DNA from: Phaeosaccion multiseriatum
Taxonomy: Eukaryota > Protista > Ochrophyta, other classes
Reading direction: 5' to 3'
Assembly (NCBI GenBank): GCA_965112735.1
Contig: OZ218964.1
Location: forward strand, 1,612,001-1,676,000
DNA: 64,000 nucleotides
Of the stretch, positions 39,901 through 58,141 are shown piece after piece. The notes beneath the pieces were generated by a model. It did no database searches. It saw nothing but the letters and a program-made list of their open reading frames with translations, and was not told the origin of the DNA. Made by a program: the position numbers and the translations under genes. How positions within the stretch are numbered: position 1 is the first letter of the stretch; each line of letters opens with the position of its first letter.

Positions 39901-42900
39901 TCTCATTGACCTCATGGACATTGAAACGTCCTTTCCCAGCGACGAGACGGACGACGAGACGGACGACGACGAGGAGGAAGGGGGGGGGGAGGGTGGGGAA
40001 GACGGTTACAAGGAGGGCGACGAGGGCCGAGGGGGTGGCAATGGCGTCGAGAGAGCGAGGAAGAGTGGCCATGGGGGTGGTGGTGGTGGTGGTGATAATG
40101 ATGATGATGATCAGGAAGGGGAGAGCAGCACCAACGGCAAGAGCCGCGGGCCCGTCTACCCTCTGGGCGAGCACAACAACTCCTTGCGCGAGCTGGACAG
40201 ACAAATCTCCTCTGTGCTGAGGCGCCTCGCTGTCGGGCCCAAGTCTCTCATGCACGTGTACTCAGAGTCGCTTCCCCAGCAGGCGCTGCAACAGCTCAGC
40301 GATGTGGCCAAGGCCGAGGGAAAGGCGGCGGGGGCGCTGCAGGTGGCTTGCTCGCTGGGCGAAAGGCTGCTGTACGAGCTCGACACGTGGAGGAGCAAGT
40401 GCTCCAGCGAAGGTGAGGTCTGCGATATGGGGTGCTTCTCGACAGGGGCTTTCTCTCTCTCTCTCTCGTATGCTCTCCCTCTCGCATCCTCTCCCTCTCC
40501 AGCGTGCTCTCCCGCCCTCTCTCTCCCTCTCTCTCTCTAGCGTGCTCCCTCTCCCTCTCTCTCTCCCTCTCTCTCTCCCTCTCCCTCTGTAGCGTGCTCG
40601 CCCGCCCCCCCTCTTCCTCTCTCCCTCCCCCTCTTCCTCCCTCTCTCCCTCCCTCTCCCTCTCTCTCTCGCTCACGCTCTTCTGGGTGTCTCACAGTGCC
40701 CAAATGCGGTGATTGGTGCAAGGCGCAAAGATGGACGTTACAAACGAGTGGCTAGGGGCTCGGGGGTTGCCGCTTTTCGTTTCTTCCCCGGCGCCCCTCC
40801 TCCCCTTCTCTTTCTCTCTCACAGAAACGCACACACACCCTGCCCCCCACCGCTTCTTACACACACACCCATGCACACATCTACCTATACACATGACCAC
40901 AGGCCGTGCAATGGAGCAGCAGCTGAGCTGGGTAAGCAAGCTCCTCCCCGGTGCGCAGCACAGCGCCCCCGCTGAAGATGCAAGGCGCCGCAGAGCCTTA
41001 CTCGCCCACCTAAGAGCACGGCGGTTGGATGAGGCGGACACTCTGGAGGAGCTCACGAGCAAGCTGAGGAGGAGGAGGAGGCAAGGGGCAGGGAAGGAGG
41101 AGGTGGCGGAGCTTGATGCTGGTGTGGCGAGGAGCAGGGGCAGGTTGACTGGTAAGTGGGTGTGTTGGTGTGTGTGGGTGTGGGTGTGGGTGTGGGTGTG
41201 GGTGGGTGTATGTGTGGGTGGGTGGGTGGGTGCGGGTGTGGATCGGGAAAGTGGGGTTGGGTGCGGGGGTGGGCGTGTGTCCGGGCCTCTCGATGTATGG
41301 ATGTATCCAATGGTTATATGCAATGGGTATGCGATGGAATGTCCGGCGGACCCTTTCCCACCCTTTGTCTTGCTTTGCATATCCTTTGCTCCTTCCCCAC
41401 CCCCTGCCCCTCCCCCTCCCCTTCCCTCTCCTTCTGAACGTTGTGCGCCATGTCGGGTGTGAGGGTTGTTAGAGGCGCGACATGAAGTAGAGAACACGCA
41501 GAGCCCCCTGACCCATGCAATGGACGCAATGGAGGCTCTCAACACATGGCCCGAAGTGCTTCTCGTTGGGCCTTCCTCACTTGAGGCGCATCTGTTGCCA
41601 GTGCTGCGCAAAGCTCCATCAGGAGGAGGAGGAGGAGGAGGTCTGGCGTTGAGGGACTGGGACGAGTACGTGCTTGTCGACGGAGGGGCGACGGGGGAGG
41701 GCGTGTTGAGCGCAGTAGCAGGACGAGGAGGAGGAGGAGCGGGGGGGGGGGAGGGAGGAGGGAGGGACAATGGGGGGTGGGGAGGGTTGGGTTCAGGGTG
41801 CTTACTGGCGCGGCGTGGTGGAGAAATGGTCCTCCTTCGCTGCTGCTCTTCCGTGCCGCAGAGGACCTCTACCTCCCACAAGGTGGGGGGTGGGGGAGCT
41901 GTCGTACAAGGAGAAGCAGGAGGAGGGGGAGGAGGGGGAAGCTTCACTGAGCAGAGGCAATGGGTGCAGCGCGAACTGATGCCAAGCCTCAAACTCCAAC
42001 GCTTCGAGTCCGTGTTGCAAGTCACTGCAGTCGTCACCTCTTCTTCTCCCCTGCCCCTCTCCTCCAACGGAGTAGCAGCCCCGATGGGTCAGGGTCAGGG
42101 TCAGGGTCAGGGTCAGGGTCAGGCTCAAGACCAGAGTCAGGGTCAGGTTCAGAGTCAGGGTCAGGGCCAGGGTCAGGGTCAGGGTCAGAGTCAAGGTCAG
42201 CTATGGATGGAGATGCGGCTCGGCGGTGCATGTGGGAGCGCGTGCACGGGGGAGGTTTGGCTGGAAGACTCGAGCTCGAGCTCCTCCTCCTGTTCCTCCT
42301 CCTGTTCCGCCTCCTCCTCCTCCTCCTCCTGCTCCCTCTCCCTCAGCGGCCCTCCTACCCCCCTCGAGGCGTGGCTGGTGTTCGTGCAGCTGCTGCAGGC
42401 ATTGGTGCACTTGCACGAGAGTGGCGTCAGTCACGGAGCCGTCTGCTTGCAGGTGGGGACATTCGGCTTGGTTGGAGGCGGCGGGGTCTGGTCGGGCTGT
42501 CTCTTGGTTTATTATTTGGAGGAGGAGTGGGCGAGGTGGAGGGGTCTTTTTCTCTCTCCCTCTCTCCATTGCCTAGCTTGGCTTTGCTTTGCATTGCTCA
42601 CCCTGTTCCTCGCCCTCCAACTCACCTCCCTCGGCTGATGGAAACGAAGCCAGCAAACGCCCCCGTGGACGGACTCTTTTCGTCTCTAACCGACTGATGG
42701 ACTGATCGACTGATCGACCAAGCGCCCCCCGCCCTTCCCGCCCTCTCCATCCATACATGCCCCATTAATTTTGTATTATATTCTTTCTCCCTTTTCTTTG
42801 CCCGCTCACCCTCCCGGCCCGCCCCTCCGGCAGAACTGTGTGGTCGTGAGGGCCGTGGCCACAGGTCAAGCCGACGGGGTGCACAAGGCGAGGAGGAAGA

Positions 42901-44086
42901 GCGACCATGCCTTACGTGCCTACCTCAGTGGTCTGGGCCCGTGCCGCCTGCTGGGGGCCGCTCCGTTAGAGTATGTTGCTCCTGAGCTCCTTCAGGGAGG
43001 AGGAGGAGGAAGAGGAGGAGGAGGAGGAGGAGGAGGAGGAGCGGGGTCTCCTGCCGCCGACATGTACGCGATGGGCATTCTCCTCACCACGGCCATGATG
43101 AAGCTCACGGCGGCCCAATTGAAGCAGGAGCAACAACACGAACAACAGTTGGTGATGCAACAACAGCAGCAGCAGGGGGCAGCAGCAGCAAGGACAACGG
43201 CGGTGGCGGCGCAGACCCCCCACCAGCGCGCTCTGTCTCGCCTTGCCGGAGAGCTGTGCCATAAGGACCCTCTGCAGCGCCCCTCCGCCGCAAAGGCCCT
43301 CTCGTCCGAGTTCTTTCGAGTGCCTCCTCGGAGCCCCCCCCCCCGCCGCCGCCGCTTCTCTGCCTCTGCCTCTGTCTCTACCTCTACCCCTTCTCCTGCC
43401 TCTGCCCTGCTTGGCGAAGATGGTGGTGCTTCTGCTGCTGCTTCTGCTGTAAGCAGTGCGGAGGATCTCTTCCCGCATCCTCCTCCTCCTCCTCAGCAGC
43501 AGCAGCAGGAGGAGGGGGGTGAGGAAGAGGAGGAGTTGTTTCCTGTAGCGTGGAAAACAGAGGAAGGGCTTGGAACGACGCTGATTCGAAATGTCAGTCT
43601 CATGTTGGGGAAAGACACCACCGACATGCCCGCGCAGCTCCTCTCTCTGGCGGCTGGGACGGGAGGAGGCGGAGGGGGTGACAATGGGCACGACAGTAGT
43701 AGCCAAGGAAGCAGCAGCAGCGGCAGGGGCAGCGACAGCTTGAAGCTGACCCGAATGCTACAGCCGCCATCGGATTGGTGGAGGGGGGCGCTGCTGATTC
43801 CCCTCTCTCCTGACGCCCCAGAGTTTGGCTTTGTGACGTCCCAGCTCCTCGGCAACAGCAGCAGTCATATGGGCTGCAGCAGCAGCAGTCCTATGGGCAG
43901 CAGCAGCAGCAGCACTAGCATGGCGGATTTCCGCATCGTGTCCATCTTTCGAGTGCAAGACAAGGGCAGGTGGCTTCAGTTCTTGCGCACTAAACAGGGC
44001 ATCAGGGAGTCGAATGCGGGACGGGGGGCGAACGAGAGGCTGCTGTGGGTGGGCCCCAACTCGACAAGCAGCCTCATGGGTACCAC

Positions 44087-44128
<42 letters not shown>

Positions 44129-44526
44129 CAGGAGCAGCAGTGCCTACGGTGGGCTGCTGGGAGGAGATAGTATGCGCTACCCGGCCCCGTGCGTTGACGG
44201 TCGAGGCTTCGACGGTGTGGCGTGCTTGGAGGATGCCAAGGTGGTGTGTGAACACCTTGATTGGGGCGGTGATGATGCAGATGGCAGCAGAGGAGGAGGA
44301 GGAGTGAGCAGAATCGCTGTATTGGCATACGTGGCACTCGGCCGATGCGAAGGGAAGGAAGAGGTGGGACAGGAGGAAAGCTTTGGGGGTGACAGAGCAG
44401 CGCCGAGCGAATGCGCCCTTCGTGTGCCAGAGGACCCGTTCGGAGGACAGGACCTTACAGCCATGACAGGAGGGGGGGGCGGGAGTAAGGCCAACAGCAG
44501 CACCACAACCACCACCACCACTATCG

Positions 44527-44557
<31 letters not shown>

Positions 44558-44786
44558 AGGTGGTTTGGTGAAGCGGCAACTCTTCCACAGTCAGTTTCTA
44601 CCTTTCTGGCCCACAAGTATCGCAGCAGCAATTGGTGACACAGCAGCGGCAGCGGCGGCAGCAGCAGCAGCAGCAGCACGAGGAGGAGGAAGAGCCGCGC
44701 GGCTGCAGGGGTACTACCGAGTGAACCCTCGGCAGGTCTGTCCCTACATCGTGGTCGAGTATCAGAGAGATGTGGTAGAGGTGTAG
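36992..44786 (+). CDS. Ankyrin repeats + helical/coiled-coil region + pseudokinase + degenerate PARP-like (ART-fold) domain; ~6 exons (36992-37355, 37456-37665, 37788-40412, 40903-41151, ~41470-42452, 42834-44786)
   Basis: About 8 ANK repeats (SALCIAA, SPLLVAV, TLLHLAA, TPLHCAS, TALALAC, TPLLVGA, NALHLGA, SPLHLAA). Kinase C-lobe QLLQALVHLHESGVSHGAVCLQN..YLSGLG..YVAPELL..ADMYAMG..DPLQRPSA. PARP-like FRIVSIFRVQD..W..F..NERLLWVG..VLAYVALG..QVCPYIVVEY. Confidence 0.75.
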
Positions 44787-45225: not shown

Positions 45226-45390
45226 CTCTGTCTGTCTGTCTGTCTGTCATGTCTGTCCGTCTGTCTGTCTGTCTGTCTATCTGTCTGTCTGTCTATCTGT
45301 CTGTCTGTCTGTCTATCTGTCTGTCTGTCTGTCTGTCTGTCTTTCTGTCTGTCATGTCTGTCCGTCTGTCTGTCCGTCTGTCTCTCTGCC
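45226..45390. repeat. (TCTG)n tetranucleotide microsatellite between the convergent gene ends
   Basis: Direct inspection. Confidence 0.9.
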
Positions 45391-45404
45391 TGCCCATAAA
45401 AACA

Positions 45405-45776
45405 TTAAGAACATACAGCATAGCAGTCCTTCTCCCACTCTTCCACCGCTGCCGTCTGCGGGTGGAAGCTGCCCGTCAGAAGGGCGCCCTCCCCCTGCCC
45501 CCCCGGGTTGTCAAGGCGCCACATGTTCTCCTTGCCCACATGCTTCATGTGCATGAGCTCCAATCCGACGTCGTCGTCGAACTCTGTGTGGTCCTCCTCC
45601 CCCGTGTTGATGGCCGTGTCCAGCACGACCTTGTCAGAAAGGGATGGGAAGGGGTGAGATGGAGTGTGGGGAATGGGTTGGGTTGGGTTACAATGAAGTG
45701 ATAGAGGAATGGGAGGGTTGGGATGTATGTGGGTGTAAGGGGTCCTAGGTATGGGGGAGGGACAGGAGGGAAGGCG

Positions 45777-45825
<49 letters not shown>

Positions 45826-46194
45826 CCACAACAACAACAAGAAGCTGTCTCGGTTCGGTCTTTGACATGTACCTGTATATCGGTACCCATGGCAAACGGC
45901 ACCACCTCCCATCTGGGTGGACGGCGGCAATCGATTCTGTGGTTTGGTGGGTGCGGTGTGATATGATGTGGTGTGGCGTGGAGTGATGTACAAGACGCAA
46001 CAGGGAGGCAAAGTGAGGCAAACCTGAGCAGAGGGGTGGGGCAGCACAGCACTGCACAGCAACCACCACCGCGAGAAGCAACAAGCAAGAGCCAAATTAA
46101 AAAGTACACCGTTACCGGCCCTCACTCTCTCCCTCTTGTCTCTCTTTCATCTCTCTTTTAATTATGTATAATATCTATATATATATATATATAT

Positions 46195-46225
<31 letters not shown>

Positions 46226-49200
46226 CTCTCTCTTCCTCTCTCTCCCCCCCTCCGTGCGTGCCTCTCATCTCCTCCCCCCTGCCCCGCCTAAGGGCACCAA
46301 CCTGTAGTACCAGTTGTTCACCCTGAACTCATTCGCACGGATGTGCGCCTGTGTGCGCTCGCGGCTCTGCGTGTCAAATGCCAAATGTCAAGTATCAAAT
46401 GTCAAGTATCAACTAGATCAAGGAAGGCAAGCAACAAACCGGACATCAGGCTTAAACTCTCACTCCACTCCTCTCCTCTCTTCAACTCACCCAAGTGGGT
46501 CCATACGGGATGAAGAATGAAGCATAGTCGCTGTCCTTTGCTGTCTGCCGGTGCACGTGCTCCTGCTCGGTCGTGTGGGACAGTAGCCCACTGTACACGA
46601 GTATGTCTGAAAAGAGGCCCCTGTTCTCTCCCCATGACAGGGTCAAGTGGTACTTTCGGAAGTTGGCATCCCAGGCCACCAGCCTTGCCAACCCGTCGTA
46701 CTGCGGAGGCACGGCACAGCACAGCACAGCACAGCAGAAGGGAGTAGAGTAGAGTATAGGGGGTGAGAGGTGGAGGATAAAGGGACGGCCAGCAGCATGA
46801 TGAGGGGGGGAGGGGGGGGGAGGAGGGGACTGTACACTGTGCGCAGAGCAGCACAGCCCTGGTCGATAGGGCAGGGGAGAGGAGAGGAGGGGAGGGGAGG
46901 GAAGGGGAGGGGAGGGGCGGGGAGGGAATAGGAGCAGGAGAGGAGCGGACTAGGAGAGTGAAGCGGAGGACTCAGGAGGGCTGGGGAGGGACTGGGAGGG
47001 CCACTCCTACCTCCTCCCTCCCCCTTCCTCCTGAGTCCTCCTTCCTTCCTCCCTCCCCCTTCCTCCCTCCTCCTCCCTCCTTCCTCCTCTCACCTCCCTC
47101 CCCCTTCCTCCCTCCCCCCTCCTCGCTCCCGCTTCCTCCCTCCTCCATCCTCTCTCCCCCCTTCTCCCTCCTACCGTACCTGGAAATGCCCTGTGGAGGA
47201 CTTGAGCGAGAGCAGGGTCGGGTTGATGCGAGCCCTGTCCAGGCCGGGAACCATCACTGATGAGAGCCAAGGGAGGAAGAGATCAGAGAGCAAACCACAC
47301 ACACAGCAAAGGTTTGTTGGGCACGGGAGATATGCAGCGGAACGCATCGGAGAAGGGGTGAGATGAAACAAGCATATGAAAAGAGAACAGAAGATCAAAC
47401 ACGCATGAGAAGAAAACAGATCAAACAAGCAAGAGACGGAGTGAGGAGGGGGAACGAGAGGTGTACAAAAGCAGAGGGAAAGGACATAAGGACGGGTTTA
47501 AGTGGCAGCAATAGCAGCAGCAGCAACAACAGCAGCAACAGCAGCAGCAGCAGTTGGTGATACTGCACCAGGTGGGGTAGAAGGTGAGATGTACGCCACG
47601 CATGCACACACACGTACACACACACACGCACACACACGCACACACGCATGGACGCACCGCTGTATCCTCTCCTTGTGTACTTGAAGAGCCTGGACACGTA
47701 GGTGGGGGACCGGTACGACAGATCCACCATGTTGTATTGCCGACAGATGGCTCGGCAGGCCCTGTGTGTACAGCAAAGCACAGCGGGGGAACGCACGGCA
47801 ACAAGGCCGGCCAAGGTAAGGCAGTGAAAAGCAGGGCGAGGAGGGTGGGGTGGAGAGACTGGAAGCAACACGGAGGAGTCAGAGAACATAGAGGCTCGTT
47901 GTGTAAGGTGTAAGGTACGACATATGGTGGAGGGGAGTGAGTGGGAGAGAGAGAGAGTGGGACGGGCAGAGAGAGGGAGAGGGGACACAGATGTTCAGCA
48001 AGAGAGAGACCAGAGAGACATAGAGAAGGAGAGAGTGAACGGGACAGAAAGTCGCAGGATAAGAGAGAGAGAGAGAGAGATTTCCTCCTCCTCCTGCTGC
48101 GGCTGATGCTGCTTCTCTTCCTCCACCTCCTCCTCTCCTCCTCCTCCTCCTGCTGCTGCTGCTCTTTCTCCTCTTCCTCCTCGTCCTTCTCCTCCTCTGC
48201 CTCTTCCTCCCCGTCCTCCTCCTCCTCCTCCTCCTTCTGCTGCTGCTGCTGCTGCTAACCTGTTGGTTGCCCACACCGTGACTCCATCAAAGGCCACAGA
48301 GCACGAGTCCACATCGAAGCCGTGAATCACCTCCGCCAAGGTCTTGTACAGACGCTGAGTATAGGCATATGGAGAGAGGGAGAGACGGAGGGTGAGAGAG
48401 AGGGAGGGGGGGAGGGGGGCAGGGAGGGTGAGAAGCACACGTTGCACACATGCCGCACTGCCCCACTGCGCGAGCACTTGAGGCAGCAAATCAGATGACC
48501 GACCGATCGCTCTGTGTGAGGAGGGGATGCGAGTCGAGTCGAGAAGCGACAAGAAGACAAGAAGCAGCAGCCACGGGAGAGGTGGGAGAGGTGGGGAGGC
48601 GGGGAGACGGGAGGGACAGGCCGGGGGGAGAAGATCGGACAGCCGTACAATAGCAGCAGCCACAACGTACTAAGAGTATGTCCGCGCGTGCGTACGTATA
48701 CATACATACGCACTTACGTACTTACCAGAACAATCTGCAGCTTCCTCTTGGGGTACTCGGAGCAGAGAGTGATGGTGTTGAGCATCTTCACTGCGAAGAC
48801 TCGTGGGTTGGCCTTGCGGACCGCTTTGTAGATCTCGGCCACTGGAGGCAGAGTGGGTGGAGGGTAGGGAGGGAGGGTGGGAAGGTGAGTGGGAGAGAGG
48901 GAGAGAGCGAGGGAGGGAGGGAGGGAGGGAGGGGGGGGAGCGGCGGGCAGAGTTGGTGGAGGCGGCGAAGGATTCAAAGGAGGAGGAAGAGGACGAAGAG
49001 GAGGGTGCTGCTGCTGCTGCGGGGTGCGGAGGGGAGAGGACAGAGGATACGTGCATGCGAAGACTACTCAATGCCACTGCCACCAGTGCTTCGGCACCTC
49101 GGGCGCTTCGGCTTACCTTTCGCATTGGCTTGCTCAGGTGTGAGCCCTGCAGGCCATCGGGCGAGGGAGGGGGGGGGGGGAGGAAGACAAGTATTTGGAG

Positions 49201-50272
49201 TATTTGGAGGAGGACAGGGTCAGGTCAGGTCAGCAGCGCCTCCTCTCTGCGTTTCCCTCTCTTTCCATCTGTCGCACGTTCCACTCTTCCAACCCCCCGA
49301 GGACACAAAACAAGGCACAGTGAAGCTCGGTATGAAGAGCCATGAAGTGCCATTATGTACGCTAAGCTAAGCACACCCCCCCTTCCCATCTCGTTTCTTG
49401 CACCACTTGCTCGCCTCCTCATCCTGGTTCTCACCCTGGCCCTCACCCTTGCAGCTTTTCCCCTCACTCTCACCTTGACCCTCTCACCCTCACCCTCACC
49501 TTTACCTGCACCCTCACCCTCACCCTCACCACCACCCTGACCCTGACCCTTGCCCCTTACCACACTCATCTTACCGTAGATAAAGATGTCCACGTCCTTT
49601 TGGAAGGCCGCAATAAGGGGTTAGGGCATAGCCATGGCAGTAACCATGGCACAGCCAAGCCAATGGGGTACAGCCACCAAGTCAAGCATTGACATTGTTC
49701 GTTGGAGGGCGGGCCAAAAGCATTGGAAAGGAATGTCGCCATGCGTTAAAGTACAGACGAGTGTTGGAAGGGGAAGAGTCGCAAATAGGGCTATGGAGGC
49801 AGAGCCCCCCCGGTCTTCCGTCAATCATCAATCCCTCCCCTCTCCCTGTGGGCCCCAAGTAACAGGCCTACAAAGGATATATACTCAAAGTCTTTGTTCG
49901 ATATCTAACTGTATGACACACTTACATTGCCCCGGTAGGCGTGGTTATGGTAGTATGCCCGGAGGTTGCCCAGCGGAGGAGGAGTGAGGCAGGCAAGCAC
50001 CGCCCCGCCCGCCACAACGACATTGTTCCAATCTACATGGACAAGTTGGTCCTCCGTGAAAGTCCTGAACTGTGAGATGAAATCCTCTCGACCCACCGCA
50101 GCAGGGCCCTTGGTGTGCCTCTCGCGATGGCAGTCGAAGAGCAGGGGGTGCTCTTCCTCGGAGGCATCGAGGCCGCTGTATTGGAACAAGTGGGCGTTTT
50201 CGAGCACATCGACGCATCCGAGTGTGGGGTCGAACAGGGCCCTCGGAATGCTGTGGAATGGGAGGAAGGTAA

Positions 50273-50325
<53 letters not shown>

Positions 50326-50641
50326 GGAGGAGGAGGAGGAGGAATAGGAGGAGAAGGGAGGTGGAGGGGACGAGTCAGGTCAGGTGTGAGAGGTGAGGGG
50401 TGAAGCGGTGCAACAGCTCTCTTGCCACCCAAGTACTCACGCACACACTTACACACTCACGCACACACTCACACACTCACGCACACATGCACTCACCCCT
50501 GGGCCGCAGACGCGTCTTCTCCTTCCTTACGTATGGCCTTGAGCGCTTCGAGGAAGCCCTCCGTGCTCTGATAGGCGAACATGGCGCGGTACTGCCGAGC
50601 CTTCCTGGCCCAGTTGTCGTTGATCTCCTGCGTGTGTGTGC

Positions 50642-50680
<39 letters not shown>

Positions 50681-53600
50681 TGTGTGTGTGCGTGTGAGAG
50701 AGAGAGAGTATGTATGTGTGTGTATGTGTATGAACGTGTGTGAGTGCATTTGTGTGTCTCTCTCTCTGTGTGTGTGCATGTGTGTGTATGTATGTGTGTT
50801 GTGCCTGTGTGCCAGCCAGATCCCCTCCCTCCCTTCCTCCTCTAACCTTCCACTGAAAGAAGTCCCCCTGATCGAAGAGCTTGCTCTGCTGGAAGGTCTG
50901 CACCCCCTCGAATCCAAGGTGGTCGAAGATGAAGCTCACGTACTCGCTCAGCAGATTGGCGAGCACGGGCACTGCTCAGAGACAATCATGCACGCACCAG
51001 GCCGAGCAGAATTAAGACAAAAGCAAGACAGGAAGTGAGGAGAGGGAAGGGAGGATAGGGTAAGATGGGAGGGAGAGAGGAAGGTAAGACAGGGTAGGAA
51101 AGACAGGGCAAGACAAGCAGACCGGGGTCCGGGAGTGAACTTGGGACCGGGAAGAAGCTGCGGGGGGGCAGCAAACAAATAAACAAACAGCAGGACTTGT
51201 GTGCTACTCTCAAGGGCTTCCCTCATACTCCGTGGCTTCACTCACGATTCTTCTCCGGGTTTCTGTTGATGAGGGCCGCGGAAGCTGACGCCGCCAGATC
51301 GCTAAGGGGACGCACAGACACACACAGAGAGACACAGACACACACAGACACACACACACCCCACACACACGACCCCAGAGCAAAGCAACGGGTAAGGAGG
51401 TCGAGGATCAGAAACGCATCATGGAGAATGGTAAAAGAGGCAAGGGAAGAAGGGCACAGCAAAGGGGAGGAAGGCGCAAGTTGTTGTTGTAAGTCGTCCG
51501 TGTCGACACCACCCAAGGTGCAAGGCGCCCAAGGTGGCCACGCAAAGCCCATCCCAGGCAATCATACGAGCATGCGAATGACCCCCCACCCCCTCTCTCA
51601 CTCTCTCTCCCTCTCTCTCTCTACTACCCCCCCATCTGTCCCTGCCCCTCTTCTCTCTCTCTCTCTCTCCCTCTCACGCTCCTCACACGTCCTTACCGCA
51701 GTGACGGGATGTCTGCCCCACTACTGAGGTAGAGGTAGGGCCCACAAGGGCTAGGGGGTGAGGGGAAACATGTCGGAGGGGCGCTGGAGAGAGAGGCACA
51801 GCCAGAAGAGCCCTCCTGAGCAGAGAATCATCATTCAAGAGCAAGGGCCAGGGTGGAAGGAGGGACAGAGGGAGAGAAAGGGGGGGGGGGGGGAGAGGGA
51901 GAGATAGAGAGGGAGGGGGAGAGAGAAAGGGACAGGGAGAGATGGAGATAGAGACAGAGACAGAGAGAGAAACGCTTAAAACTTGTACTCTTCACTCTTC
52001 GCCGTCTACCAGGTCAGTTCACTTCATTAGACCTTCACCAATGTAGACAACTACCGATCCAAAATGTCGATCCGCAACATCGACTACCCCTCCCCCGCTC
52101 CCCCCCTCACCTTTGCCGCAGTATTCTGGGAGCGAATGGCTTCATCTCTCTCCCTTCTGCGCTTCTTGGTATTACTCTCTCGTGCAGCCTTTCTGGCTTC
52201 TGCTGCCTTCTTGCCTTCTGCTGTCGTCGTCCCGACTGCGAAGCCCGGGCTCTCCTTATCGGCGCCACTCCCGACACTCTTGAAGAGCCCTCCGGTCTTT
52301 CGAATCATTTGCTCACACTCCAGCAGGCGCTGCAAGCAGGGAGGAGGGGGAAGGAGGAGCAAGAGAGGAAGAGGAGAAGGAGGAACGGTCAGACAAAGAG
52401 ACAACAACAACAGCACACGCGCGTGAGGTGAGGTGAGGTGAAGTGAGGTGAAATGAGAGGTGAGGTGAGATGAAATGAGAGGTGAAGTGCGGTGAAATGA
52501 GGTGAAATGAGAGGTGAGGTGAGGTGAAATGAGAGGTGAGGTGAGATGAGGTGAGATGAGGTGAAGTGAGGTGAGATGAGAGGTGAGGTGAGATGAGGTG
52601 AAGTGAGGTGAAGTGAGGTGAGATGAGAGGTGAGGTGAGGTGAGGTGAGATGAGAGGTGAGGTGAGGTGAAATGAGAGGTGAGGTGAGGTGAAATGAGAG
52701 GTGAGGGGAGGTGAGAGGCGAGGTGAGGTGAGGTGAAGTGAGGTGTGGTCATGAGGTGTGGTCAGGTTGTCAGGTTCACTCACCTCCTTGGCCTCCTTGG
52801 CGAGCACGTTCTTGCTCTGATCTCCGAGGGTGCGCACGATGTAACGGAAGTCGCGGATGGCCTGTGATGTCATGTGATGTCATGTGATGAGAGGTGATGA
52901 GGAGTGAGGTGTGTGTGAGGTAAGACATGGGTTTGAGAAATGGTCCAGTCAGTCAGAGACAAGACAAGAGCAGCGAGGCAAAAGGCAGTGGCAGAGACAG
53001 AGACAGCAAGACATCAGAGGGGGAGAGGCGGAGAGGCCGCGGCGGAGTGAGGAAGGGAGTAAAGGAGAGGAGAACAGGGCTGAAGCTGAAACTCACCGCA
53101 TTGTAGTTCTTCCTCTCCTTGCTGGCGAGGCCTCTCGTGGAGTAGCCCTGGGCGGAGCACACCAGCACAAGCCGTAGTAGCAGGGGCAGCAGGAATAGCG
53201 TATGTTGTGATTGATGGAGATGGACAGGCAAGCGCCGGCATAGAGGGGATGAAACTGTCACTGACTTACTACAAGCCTTTGTAATGGATAGGCAAGTATC
53301 AGAAATGAAGCCACAGTGGTAGGCAACGACCGGCCCCCCTCGATGTCAGTATTCATCAGTATGGGAGTTTCCCACGATAGATACGAGCACGACGGGCCTC
53401 ACTCAAAGCGCACGCATTCACGCACACACACTACACACACACGTACACAGAGACAGAGACACACACACACCAGAGAGAGAAGAACCACAGAGAGAGACAT
53501 AGATACACATACACAATAGGGAGAGACAGATACCATGAGAGCTGACGTATATACATACATACGTACGCGTATGCACCTACGTACCTTGAGGTAGGTGGGG

Positions 53601-55664
53601 TCCATTTCGATGCAGTGGTTGGCGTCGAAGCTCGCACTACCCATGTTGCCCCACTTGAGGTGGGCTAGAGCCCTGTTCCCGTACAGCCTTGAACAAAGGA
53701 TCCTGGCCTCCTTCTCCACCTCCTCCTCTTTTCCGTAGGGGCCCAGCGCCTCCTCCTCCTCCCCCTGCGGCCCTTCCCCCCCCTCCTCGTCGCCCTTCTC
53801 TTCCTCCTCGCCCTCGAGCTGAAACCGCGTAATGGGGGCGGGGAGCACTCTGTGCGACACGTACTGAAGAGCCTCAGAGTAGTGATCCACGGCCTCCGAG
53901 AGTCTGAGAGAGAGTGAGAGAGAGGGCGGGGGGGGGGGGGGGGCGGGGAGCGTGTGTGAGAGAGGGAGAAGAGAGAGGGGGGGGGAGAGGGGAGCACACA
54001 CAACATAAGGGGGGAGGATAAGCACGAGGAAATGAGGAACTTCACCAAAAGAAGGGGCCGAGTAGGTGGCAAGCAGGCAGGCTCATGGGCAGACAGGAAG
54101 GGAGGCATGTGGACAGGCAAGCAGGTAGAGCGAGAGCTGAGGCAAGGGCTACATGAGGACAACAGTAGCACGTAGGACACAAAGGAGGCCCAGCGGCAAG
54201 AGAGGCTCACGCACACACGCACACACACACACACGCGCGCACACGCGCACACACACCTCTGGTTCTGGAAGGCGACATTGCCCTGGTCCTTGAGCTTTGT
54301 CGCCACCGCCACTGCCTCCCCGAGGGTCTTGTCCGAGCCGAGACGCGCCTGCTGCCCAGCAGGACTGTGAGCCTCGAGCTGCCTGCGCTGCACCTCAATC
54401 ACGCGCATGGCCTTCTGTAACTGCTCCTCCAAGCTTGGGCCCGCCGTTTCAGACCCCGCAGCTTTCGCCTCCCCGCCACCACTCCCTTCAGCTCCTGCTG
54501 CTGCTGCTGCTGGTGGTGGCCGTGCTGTTGCGCCCGACCCTCGGTTCCTCCGAGCCTTCCCTGCTTTCCCCCCTCTCCCCTTGGCGCTCGTACTGCTTGA
54601 CACGCTCCTATTATTTACTCCCCCTGTTCCTCCTTTGAGTGATCGCTTACGGGCCAGCGGCGGTCTCTCCTTATCTTGATCCTCTCCGCCGCCGCTGCTG
54701 CTGCTGCTGCTATCGTCGCTGCTGCTGCCGAGCTTGAGCAGCGCCGCTCTCAGCTTATTTGTGACGCCTTTCGATGGCGCCTTCCTGGTCGTTGTTGATG
54801 CTGCTGCTGCTGGTGCTGCTGCTGCGGCTGCCGCTGCCGCTGCCGCTGCCGCTGCCGCTGTAGGGCACGAATCGTCGCGAGCGGAAGAAGAGGGAATCAG
54901 GTAAGCGGGGGGGATCCAGCCCGTATGAGGAGGGAGAGAGGAGTTGCAACTGGAAGGCGAGGGAAAGGAAAGAGCGAAGGGGGAGGGGTGGACGTGGAAG
55001 TTGTGACAGATGGAGCAAGTTCACAAGGATATACCTTCCTTCTCCTTCAGCTGCTTCTCCACCGCCAGCTTCGCCTTTTTCGCCTGCTTGCGTCTCTGCT
55101 CCGCTTCTTCCTTCTCCTTCCTCTCCTTTGCGCGCGCTCGCTCTCGCTCTCTCTCCTCCCTCTCAGGGTCTGCTGCTCCAGAGTTCATGAAGCTACACGG
55201 CAAAGAGCAAAAGACGCATGATATCTCGTAAGTAGCCTTACGCAGAGAAATGAACGACTGGCTAAAGGACGGCCTCAAGGGCTACACAGACGTACTTGGC
55301 GAGAAACTGCATGGGGTTTGTTGCGTCCATGGGCCCTCCTGGCCCTGGGAATGGGAATGGAACCTGCGGCCCTCCCCCCCCTCCTCCTCCTGCCATTCCT
55401 TGGAACATCTGCATGAAACTCGCCATCATTTGCGGGTCCATCTGGCCTGGCATTTCTACTCCTCCTCCTCCCCCCCCCCCCCCCCCCTCCTCCTCCTCCT
55501 CCTCCTCCATCATCCGATTCCTCCGAGTTTGAGCAAAGACCCGGTGGCCCGTCGCTGCTATCGTCGTCGTCGTTGTCGATAAGTCCAGGAGGCCCTCCGT
55601 CCGAGTCACTGCTACCTCCTGTATCGCTCCCTATGTTATCCCATTTCGAGTAGTTTAACGCCAT
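45405..55664 (-). CDS. YSKWD-motif N-terminus + 3 TPR + BC-box-like motif + Pol-beta-superfamily nucleotidyltransferase domain; ~22 exons (apparent frameshift at C18 55470-55487)
   Basis: MALNYSKWDNI. TPRs KLKDQGNVAF..AVDHYSEAL, LYGNRALAHLKWG..DPTYLK|GYSTRGLA..|AIRDF. Linker exons 51815-51697 and 51301-51246 give IPSLRDLAA..LPVL in frame. NTase DWNNVVVAGGAVLACL..N|DVDIFIYG|LTPEQA..QIVL|RLY..EVIHGFDVDSC..FDG..RSPTYVSRLFKY..RG..TGSFHP. Confidence 0.7.
52423..52745. repeat. Degenerate pentanucleotide (GAGGT/GAAGT/GAGAT/GAAAT)n array filling an intron
   Basis: Direct inspection. The HLTSP ORFs here are artefacts. Confidence 0.9.
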
Positions 55665-56192: not shown

Positions 56193-58141
56193 CTACATGT
56201 CCTCCCATGAAAGGGACGTGGCCACTTTGGCTGCCACTTTCCTCCTGCCAGCCCCACCCTCCTTCCCCTTGGCGGCGCTGCCCTTGGTCTTGGTGGTGCT
56301 TCCCTTGGTCGCCGCCCCCGATGACACCTTGGCCTTCTTTGCCGCAGCACCCGCCTGCCGCGGCGCCTTTGCCTTTGCCTTCCCCTTCCCCTTTCCCTGT
56401 CCGACCACCTCCTCGCTCGCCCCCACCTCGAGCTTTCCCTTCTTATCCTTCGCCGCGGCCTTCTTAGGCACTGCTGCTGGCTTCTTCTTGCCGCTGGCTT
56501 TCTGGGCTGCTCTTCGCGCGTTGTGAGCTTTCTCGTCTGCCTTGGCCTTGGGTCTGTACACTACTTTCTCCACAGGCTTTCCTTTCTTCTTCTTCCCCGC
56601 CACCTTCTTCACTACCACTGTCCTTTCTTCTTCCTCCTCCTCCTCCTCCTCCTCCTCCTCCTCCCCCCTCCTCCTCCTCCTCCTCCTCCAAACCCACCTC
56701 ATTCGCACTCTCCTCCTCCTGCTCCTCGCCACCCTCCTCTTCTTCCTCCTCCTCCCCTTCGTCATCCTCATCCTCATCGCTCATATCCACATCCCCGTCC
56801 CCATCCTCCATCTCCCCTGCCTTCCTCTTCTTGGTCGCCTTGGCCGCTGCCTTCTTGTCCTGAATGCTCTTGAGCTTCTCTGCAAGCCCCGGCACCTCTA
56901 CCATCACCTCCGGCTCGGCCTTGATGCTCGCAATGGTCTCTCCCTCCGCCAGGGGAGGCGCCACAAAGAAGGGAAGCTTGCCTCTTTGCCAGTCGTTGAT
57001 CACATTCACCGCAATACATCCCAAGTCGGGTTCCCCGCCCTGCATCAGCCTACCCTGCTTCTTGGCCACCTGCGTCAGAAAGTCCTCCGCGTCCTTCCAG
57101 TCCCCCACCCCGTACACCCGCTTCATGTACTCCTTCTTGACCCTCTCCAGGATGGGAGGCACAAACTCTGTGGGGTCGGGCAGCCTCTCTGCGCGCACCA
57201 CCCCCTTGAGCACTGTCTCTGCCTCGTCGTCGCCAACATCGTACACCACACCGGGGCAGTCAATAATGTATATTCTCCGCATCAGCGTAATGTATTGCCA
57301 CACCTTCGTCTCCCCAGGGATGGGAGCCACTTTGCACACCTTCTTCTTCTTGAGTGTGTTGATGATGGAGCTCTTGCCCACGTTGGGGTAACCGACGATA
57401 CCCACCGATATCTGCTTCCTGTCCGTGTGCAGCTTTGCGAATTGCCGCAACAGGTTGATGAGCGCTCCCTTGCCGAAGCTGTTGGTGATACTCGCGTGGA
57501 AGGCAAGCGTGGGGTTGTCTTTGCTGAGGATCTTTACCCACTTCTTCGTCACCCAGTTGGGCACCAAGTCACACTGAACAGGTTGGGAGGAAGCAGGAGG
57601 GAGGGGGGGGGGGAGGCGGGGCAAGTGTTAGAGCAGAAGAAGGGAGGAGGAGGAGTGGAGGGGACATTGACATTGGAGAGGTCAGTCCCTCAGGGTTGTG
57701 ACAGGACTCTGATTGATGGGGACGCACCGGACGGACTACCATCCCCCATCCTACACATGAACGCACATGCTCACGCGCAAGTCCACGCCCCTCTTTCCTT
57801 CCCCTCCCTCCCTCCCTCCCTCCCTCCCTCCCTCCCTCCCTCCCCCCCTCTCTCTTAGTCCGGACCTTATTGATGACGAACACCAAGTGTTTGTGCGGTG
57901 CGTTCTTCTTGAGATGCTTCTCCATGTGCATGCAGCGCGTCCCTGGCACGTTGCGCGCGTCAAGCACCTGAATCACCACGTCCGAGCAGTCCAGCACCTT
58001 GTACAGCTCCGCCCAGATGCGCTTGCTCTGCCCCTTCTCAAACAGGTCCTTGCGCGTGAAGGTCTCGTACTCCAGGTCCTCCTCGTCCTCCAGCGCGCGT
58101 GCGCCTGTGTCTCTGCGGCCCACTTTCTCGTATGCCTCTTG

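Follow-up and report, generated by a model that had tools for sequence, protein, structure and literature searches.

Herein, we analyzed a 64,000-nt stretch of the genome of the ochrophyte Phaeosaccion multiseriatum (67 Mb in 22 contigs), hereafter the window (G000:C15:1612001-1676000), and report on a locus on its minus strand; positions without a contig label are those of the window. We consider it probable, at roughly 0.6, that positions 55664-45405 hold a single protein-coding gene of ~22 exons and ~1,185 codons. Its product runs from an acidic N-terminus through a domain of three tetratricopeptide repeats (TPRs), a basic Ser/Pro-rich linker and a five-helix module to a ~500-residue nucleotidyltransferase (NTase). 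The TPR-Gad2 fusion is an undescribed yet conserved architecture within a known enzyme family. We regard four results as established: how the exons are laid out, that homology is collinear along the locus, to which families the domains belong and that the architecture as a whole is conserved among stramenopiles, Amoebozoa and chytrid-like fungi. Beyond this locus, the gene carries a lesson for annotation, as tracks of open reading frames (ORFs) break it into seemingly unrelated fragments. An initial annotation, made from the letters alone, had proposed such a hidden fusion; its calls on the fusion, the TPR type, the NTase and the range of the family were borne out, whereas its BC-box and its viral ancestry were not.

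The reading as one gene is carried by relatives that hold both halves in one polypeptide and by a collinear profile match. Exons were used singly as queries, and a HMMER search with exon 12 returned as its best match an 831-aa protein (P0235, residues 562-667) with ~560 residues ahead of the matched region; further matches also had long N-terminal extensions, and TPR repeats precede the NTase. Fused relatives include Ectocarpus P0236/P0382 (CAM9345517.1), the Joint Genome Institute (JGI) metagenome protein P0235, Trinity transcripts of the amoebozoans Clastostelium, Protostelium and Phalansterium (P0238, P0244 and P0252) and chytrid-like fungal proteins of Hyaloraphidium and Gonapodya (P0305 and P0319), all with a common order in which acidic repeats come first, the three TPRs second and the NTase last, after a small helical module. 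Specifically, P0235 is intron-free, an uninterrupted ORF of 831 codons on its metagenome contig, as are P0239 and P0241 on theirs, and one Ectocarpus protein is matched by both halves of the window locus. When ten fused proteins were made into a profile (the fused-family profile), its matches to the locus were collinear, beginning in the TPR exons, passing exons 9 and 10 and ending in the last NTase exon. Further, the peptide over the 51697/51301 junction (..GADIPSLR/DLAASASAALI..) aligns with [VI]-P-x-L-x3-A-A-x2-V-A, which is conserved in all fused relatives, and the spliced IPSLRDLAAS fits this motif slightly better than VRPLSDLAAS, read through the acceptor. Because the relatives share both the collinear architecture and the junction motif, we accept the chain of exons proposed initially (donor 52111; 51815-51697; 51301-51246; acceptor 50971), every coordinate of which was correct on re-check.

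One gene or two

Across the window exons, all introns (21/21) have GT-AG borders and the phases of all exons agree. Exons 1-7 (55664-52111) are mutually in phase, and the NTase half, which runs from acceptor 50971 to the stop codon TAA at 45405, comprises 13 exons; the GT-AG introns that flank them are 124-498 nt long, and the concatenated exons stay open for 529 codons. Introns at the locus are rich in microsatellites. The two halves meet in a 1.1-kb interval, where donor 52111 (phase 0, score 9.7) is the strongest donor-like site and lies 27 nt ahead of an in-frame TAG at 52084. Exon 8 (acceptor score, 5.2; donor score, 7.8) has stops right upstream and no in-frame ATG, and its 3' end, IPSL plus two bases, fits the conserved [VI]PxL. 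Exon 9 has a coding-like codon score of +0.73 in this frame only, and acceptor 50971 opens into PVLANLLSEYV... Because a TGA adjoins this acceptor upstream and there is no ATG, exon 10 needs a spliced upstream exon.

Several observations weigh against a single gene. Exon 8 has an intron-like codon score (-0.48), and its 5' edge is based on splice signals alone, making it the weakest exon. Open paths between plausible splice sites are as many in the wrong phases (1-7) as in the right phase (4-8), and splice phase alone gives the linking exons 51815-51697 and 51301-51246 no significance. As a proxy for transcripts, we looked for near-identical database proteins from Phaeosaccion; there were none, either of the window gene or of a paralogue, and the splice junctions are predicted ones. 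An alternative reading is that of two adjacent genes, the TPR gene stopping at TAG 52084, or in exon 8 through a TAA when donor 51697 is read through, and the NTase gene having its own promoter and an ATG at 51552, from which reading would cross a (TG)n tract to reach exon 9. Open paths from an ATG to a donor that joins 50971 do exist, the start at 51552 is formally open, there are options for a terminal exon after 52111, and, given a head-to-tail spacing of ~0.5 kb just upstream in the window, 1.1 kb could fit a 3' end and a promoter. We nevertheless regard two genes as distinctly improbable: the alternative first exon scores as non-coding (-0.29 to -0.37) and is in part a microsatellite, the halves share one ORF or one transcript in relatives, the junction peptide fits a conserved motif and a strong donor stands just ahead of the stop. 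Counts of splice paths and the codon-usage score were also tried as arbiters of one versus two genes, and neither decides alone.

Another point against an intact gene is that exon 1 goes one base out of frame within a run of 18 Gs. Ahead of the run, the frame encodes a stretch with homologues in the N-termini of relatives; behind it, the shifted frame is required for the phase of exon 2. Since the sequence is coding-like on both sides, a homopolymer assembly error is probably the simplest reading, and comparable breaks may be hidden wherever else this assembly has a long homopolymer in a coding exon. Were the break real, the gene would be a recently disabled copy, its protein either absent or begun at an internal ATG pair near 55513, with loss of the conserved acidic N-terminus. 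The change of frame by one base between 55488 and 55469, and the in-frame ATG-ATG offered by the second frame, speak for such a reading. It is highly improbable, given that an 18-G homopolymer is a classic site of assembly error and that the other 21 exons are open and in phase, with invariant residues retained. In every full-length fused protein, an acidic motif (D/E-rich, PPxL, a Ser run and a D/E run) occurs at the N-terminus in 2 to ~10 copies; it is seen in P0244, P0252, P0382 and P0235 and, in the window, at 55530-55615, where it reads GGPPGLIDNDDDDSSDGPPGLCSNSEESDD; the repeated motif looks like a phospho-regulated short linear motif.

The nucleotidyltransferase domain and its family

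The NTase exons match a eukaryotic protein family of ~500 residues collinearly, end to end. When exon 12 alone was the query, a language-model search led to clusters of Gad2, NTP_transf_6 and PolyA_pol, and a paralogue on contig 6, found via the same exon, retrieved 149 relatives by word search, with all of the 120 listed carrying a precomputed PF26128 (Gad2) call, as do the fused relatives P0235, P0239, P0241 and P0060. Because its exons match PF26128-bearing relatives collinearly, we assign the window NTase, by homology, to the Gad2 family. Scans of the window ORFs and the paralogue against PDB sequences and a Pfam set that lacks PF26128 gave no NTase match. All NTase motifs read off initially were found, namely AGGAV (50012-49998), DVD (49596-49588), FDVD (48318-48307), FDG (48291-48283) and RLFKYTRRGY. 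The catalytic signature is complete at the aligned positions (AGGAV, DVD, GFDVD, FDG, RSPTY and RLFKY), and the window keeps the invariant or near-invariant residues of the family (the G of hGG, DxD, Q..R.Y, GFDxD, DG and RSPxY..RLxKY), with two near-invariant sites substituted (R to Y and E to V). Since these residues are retained, the enzyme looks catalytically competent.

A Pol-beta-type NTase with a head like those of CCA-adding enzymes and poly(A) polymerases had been proposed, and fold matches of a relative agree with this. The AlphaFold model of that relative (P0001; 62-sequence alignment; predicted local distance difference test score [pLDDT], 85) best matched class II A-/CCA-adding enzymes (Foldseek E, 1e-4; Z, 9.3; root-mean-square deviation, 3.8 over 184 residues), followed by bacterial poly(A) polymerase and TENT5. 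The PolyA_pol profile of Pfam matched neither the window exons nor the paralogue, at permissive E-values too, nor the relatives; hence, the resemblance to CCA-adding enzymes and poly(A) polymerases is structural only.

In line with the initial annotation, members of the family are common among fungi and giant viruses. It is named for phage Gad2, a predicted nucleotidyltransferase that blocks the bacterial defense system Gabija, and our literature search found only this phage protein described, as a predicted enzyme, and no paper on the eukaryotic family or the TPR fusion. Gad2-type NTases are widespread and occur in fungi, protists, giant viruses and phages. The genome of Phaeosaccion holds three family members: the window gene, with its closest relatives in brown algae and Phaeothamnion, and two genes on contig 6. 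One of the latter (G000:C6:3461848-3464300) appears to be a stand-alone gene with an upstream exon that starts at an ATG, and its nearest relative is a Cymbomonas protein; the other (G000:C6:3294900-3295910) is more divergent (DIDLF, GFDVDCC).

In an unrooted tree of 45 rows (quick search; Shimodaira-Hasegawa-like approximate likelihood ratio test [SH-aLRT] supports only; window gene left out), fused proteins stood apart from 33 stand-alone ones with a split support of 97, the stramenopile fused proteins formed a clade with a support of 100 and the contig-6 paralogue grouped with a green-alga protein; a single origin of the fusion was not rejected. Three of the four giant-virus copies fell within the stand-alone group, away from the fused clade, and the unrooted tree thus lends no support to the viral ancestry suggested at the outset. 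Giant-virus metagenome-assembled genomes (MAGs) carry 40%-identical NTase copies followed by ankyrin repeats, and predicted giant-virus structures with the NTase domain are annotated with ankyrin, BTB, F-box or VWFA. At three such MAG loci (L017:3001-7494, L015 and L018), an N-terminal NTase opens frames of >1,500 codons that run into ankyrin repeats and past the end of the locus. Other members are fused to PARP catalytic domains (P0277, P0260 and P0299) or to ankyrin repeats and PBZ (P0246). Two further architectures are a PNK 3'-phosphatase, the NTase and a kinase-type AAA_33 P-loop domain (P0314), and an RPA-type oligonucleotide-binding (OB) fold with SAM ahead of the NTase (P0317); by analogy, these suggest nucleic-acid end processing.

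The TPR domain, the helical module and possible function

That the TPRs are of the co-chaperone type, as first proposed, is supported from two sides. Exon 4 matched SPAG1 (E, 3e-6) among PDB sequences, then SGT1, SGTA, PP5 and STI1, all of which bind Hsp70/Hsp90 peptides. The TPR region of fused relative P0241 has PP5 as its best match (E, 9e-29; ~50% identity, including the post-TPR helix), and P0235 weakly matches the PPP5 region of Pfam. Judged from the window exon and P0241, three TPR motifs and a capping helix are present and are closest to EEVD-binding TPRs. The five clamp residues known from PP5 and Hop are K, N, N, K and R; the window copy keeps the first four (KLKDQGN holds K and N, GNRA the second N and LKGY the second K) and has Thr as the fifth. 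We predict, from the matches, that the window TPR is of the Hsp70/Hsp90-binding (carboxylate-clamp) type. TTC4/Cns1 and TTC1 were considered as identities for this part and rejected: 52111-50971 encode no TTC4-type C-terminal domain, and the relatives indicate PP5. A separate PP5-type TPR-linker region of canonical form is found on contig 9 (G000:C9:301802-302059; PF08321, 83.9 bits), so the TPR-NTase gene coexists with an ordinary PP5.

The module between linker and NTase begins with a conserved helix that opens a stretch of ~70 residues, present in fused proteins and in one Anaeramoeba protein that lacks TPRs and absent from stand-alone family members. Modeled alone from a nine-row alignment, it forms a compact bundle of five helices (pLDDT, ~90). 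Foldseek returned no significant match for it (best E, 1.6), and in a wide structural search, the best Z was 6.3 (an MgtE domain), within the stated noise range. The initial annotation had likened PSLxxLA to an Elongin BC-box. PSLxxLAA is indeed conserved, and it is helix 1 of this module, which has neither a Pfam match nor a significant fold match. Were the conserved helix (IPSLRDLAASASAALI) a true BC-box, the module would recruit Elongin B/C and a cullin, and the protein would be a ubiquitin-ligase substrate receptor or itself cullin-regulated. With (A/P/S/T)-L-x3-(C/S/A)-x3-(A/I/L/V) as the consensus, most relatives fit the loose pattern (L at 2, A/S at 6 and V/A at 10), an [IL]PxE[YF]L helix follows ~20 residues later, giant-virus relatives carry BTB or F-box domains and the wide fold search lists Elongin A and the N-terminus of APPBP2, a CRL2 receptor. 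These last matches are at noise level (Z, 4.0 for Elongin A residues 571-639 and 5.3 for APPBP2), below an unrelated one; the Elongin_A, F-box and SOCS profiles of Pfam matched nothing in seven relatives or in the genome; the helix belongs to a compact bundle (pLDDT, >90); and the window stretch S-L-R-D-L-A-A-S-A-S has Ser at position 10, where a hydrophobic residue is required, and Leu for Pro in the second helix. A BC-box is therefore improbable here, a lead rather than a finding.

How might such a protein work? The TPR domain would dock the enzyme on the C-terminal tails (EEVD peptide) of Hsp90 or Hsp70, and it may gate the NTase as the TPR of PP5 gates its phosphatase. The catalytic domain would act as a template-independent nucleotide-adding enzyme. 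Its most likely acceptor would be a nucleic-acid 3' end, which we favor because of the fold, like those of CCA-adding enzymes and poly(A) polymerases, and of the PNK, RPA-type OB, PARP and PBZ fusions in the family. We propose, tentatively and with considerable doubt, an old eukaryotic enzyme class that combines the Hsp90-operated TPR switch of PP5 with a Gad2-type NTase of phage anti-defense kinship, in which chaperone occupancy would control whether nucleotides are added, without a template, to the ends of RNA or DNA or to another acceptor. Members of this class would occur in amoebae, in chytrids and in the brown algae with their relatives. Three observations weigh against the mechanism outlined here. 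The fifth clamp position is Thr, with Arg one residue later (KGYSTRG), versus KGYYRR or KAYFRR in relatives; the fold evidence is drawn from P0001 rather than from the window protein; and the sole studied member, Gad2, which blocks Gabija, gives no clue to the substrate.

A protein of the conflict or immunity type, rather than a modifier of chaperone clients, would use the TPR domain merely as a protein-binding handle, and its NTase, like phage Gad2 or the copies in giant viruses, would produce or alter a nucleotide signal or a target in a defense pathway. The family takes its name from an anti-defense protein, copy numbers are expanded in mushrooms and ankyrin, BTB, F-box, VWFA, PARP and PBZ fusions occur in giant viruses and protists, all of which is in line with conflict. 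The TPR domain, by contrast, is a three-repeat, PP5-like clamp and no long sensor array, and the fused gene is apparently single-copy, conserved across supergroups and not fast-evolving. We therefore consider a role in conflict unlikely. Under the chaperone-linked reading, the PP5-like fusion, conserved in three eukaryotic supergroups, predicts a partner (Hsp90/Hsp70 tails) and a regulation that can be tested with peptides, and the PNK, OB-fold, PARP and PBZ partners direct the search for the chemistry to nucleic-acid ends or ADP-ribose signaling.

Exons, surroundings and known systems

Table 1. Exons of the TPR-NTase locus and the homopolymer within exon 1, with features and matches (E-values are from the fused-family profile unless another source is named)
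Feature	Position	Strand	Features and matches
Exon 1	55296..55664	-	ATG 55664, N-terminus MALNYSKWDNI; two acidic PPGL-D/S-rich repeats, then Met/Gly-rich stretch; repeats align to P0235 (alignment E 1.5e-4) and to repeats in P0382, P0252 and P0244; donor CAA/GTACGT after 55296
18-G homopolymer within exon 1	55470..55487	-	One-base frame shift: 1 base extra or 2 short
Exon 2	55035..55192	-	FMNSGAADPE, then K/E-rich coiled-coil-like stretch; AG/GT flanks, phase fits exons 1 and 3
Exon 3	54257..54857	-	Ala/Ser/Gly low-complexity, helical stretch, start of TPR1 (KLKDQGNVAFQNQ)
Exon 4	53585..53903	-	Remainder of TPR1, acidic insert, TPR2 (NRALAHLKWGN..DPTYLK); Pfam TPR_1 E 9.4e-5; profile E 6e-9
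Exon 5	53097..53147	-	First half of TPR3 (GYSTRGLASKERKNYNA); aligned to KGYYRR of relatives
Exon 6	52784..52861	-	Second half of TPR3 (AIRDFRYIVRTLGDQ..); profile match
Exon 7	52111..52329	-	Post-TPR helix (RLLECEQMIRKTGGLFK) and K/R-rich linker; aligns to ECEQKVRAKGFGK of Ectocarpus and to profile hmm positions 107-173; donor AAG/GTGAGG
Exon 8	51697..51815	-	119 nt, Ser/Pro-rich linker ending ..GADIPSL; AG/GT flanks
Exon 9	51246..51301	-	56 nt, DLAASASAALINRNPEKN, helix 1 of five-helix module; aligns to P0235 residues 456-477 and to profile hmm positions 161-184
Exon 10	50847..50971	-	PVLANLLSEYVSFIFDHLGFEGVQTF.., rest of helical module; E 0.0012
Exon 11	50497..50627	-	N-terminal helix of NTase protein (..ARQYRAMFAYQ..); YRxLFA motif conserved
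Exon 12	49926..50250	-	Start of NTase core, hGG motif (VVAGGAVLACL); 54-56% identity to P0235, P0236 and P0237; E 1e-37
Exon 13	49575..49596	-	DVDIFIY, two catalytic Asp of DxD
Exon 14	49117..49146	-	30 nt, LTPEQANAK; matched in profile search
Exon 15	48726..48841	-	Core strands (..ITLCSEYPKRKLQIVL); E 6e-11
Exon 16	48260..48354	-	RLYKTLAEVIHGFDVDSCSVAFDG.., invariant G-F-D-x-D and D-G; E 6e-18; 88% identity to Ectocarpus across 32 residues
Exon 17	47658..47761	-	..NMVDLSYRSPTYVSRLFKYTRRGY; E 2e-16
Exon 18	47180..47256	-	VMVPGLDRARINP..; profile and Ectocarpus alignment
Exon 19	46491..46700	-	Middle domain with SDYASFFIPYGPTW; E 2e-4
Exon 20	46302..46366	-	NNWYYR aligned to NDWFYR
Exon 21	45873..45936	-	Ectocarpus alignment
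Exon 22	45405..45629	-	MWRLDNPGGQ..LTGSFHP..EEWEKDCY; TAA stop 45407-45405; E 1e-10

Around these exons (Table 1), a convergent neighbor on the plus strand (41640-44786) matches a protein-kinase C-lobe (E, 2.4e-8) and, below threshold, PARP (E, 0.009); its adjacency to an NTase gene may be due to chance. The short gap between the convergent genes holds a (CAGA)n/(GACA)n microsatellite directly after the stop codon (45250-45400). Upstream, on the same strand, lies a GTPase exon (56464-57624; MMR_HSR1 E, 3e-17) whose low-complexity tails are acidic and basic, and the last coding part of this gene ends ~0.5 kb ahead of ATG 55664. Intron 6 carries, at 52420-52780, a degenerate repeat of the CACCTCA/CTCACCT type, with a 7-residue SPHLTSH periodicity and two long spurious ORFs. 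An ORF that reads through an intron (50493-50972) was tried as a word-search query, and His/Thr low-complexity matches swamped the result, leaving nothing usable.

Among known systems, the TENT5/FAM46 proteins are eukaryotic NTases under protein-partner regulation and gave second-tier structural matches (Z, 6-7), although there is no detectable sequence similarity and the C-terminal domains are unlike. The P0001 model is structurally closest to class II CCA-/A-adding enzymes and bacterial poly(A) polymerase (Z, 9.3-7.5), which have the hGG helix-turn and DxD in the same order as the family; they differ in their low identity (12-17%), in the missing PolyA_pol match, in the regions after the head and in their motifs B and D, which we could not recognize in the family. 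The giant-virus NTase proteins with ankyrin, BTB or F-box domains (for example, Fadolivirus A0A7D3QUG1) belong to the same family (Foldseek E, 9e-38; template modeling score, 0.76), whereas their ankyrin, BTB or other partners are mostly C-terminal and a PP5-like TPR is lacking. Phage Gad2, from SPbeta-like phages, is likewise a predicted nucleotidyltransferase, with PF26128 as the common assignment by precomputed calls on close relatives of the window protein. It is a stand-alone protein of ~400 aa, in contrast to the eukaryotic proteins, which have added N- and C-terminal regions, here the TPRs. A tblastn search of 50,697 phage records with a eukaryotic member gave no match, and we therefore regard the relationship as remote. 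PP5/Ppt1 differs in its catalytic domain, a phosphatase of the PPP type as opposed to a nucleotidyltransferase, and in its TPR domain: in the window copy, an acidic stretch is inserted between the first two TPRs, and the fifth clamp residue is Thr. The likeness lies in the layout: an N-terminal domain of three TPRs, followed by a conserved helix (ECExx..F..AI), is placed before the catalytic domain in both.

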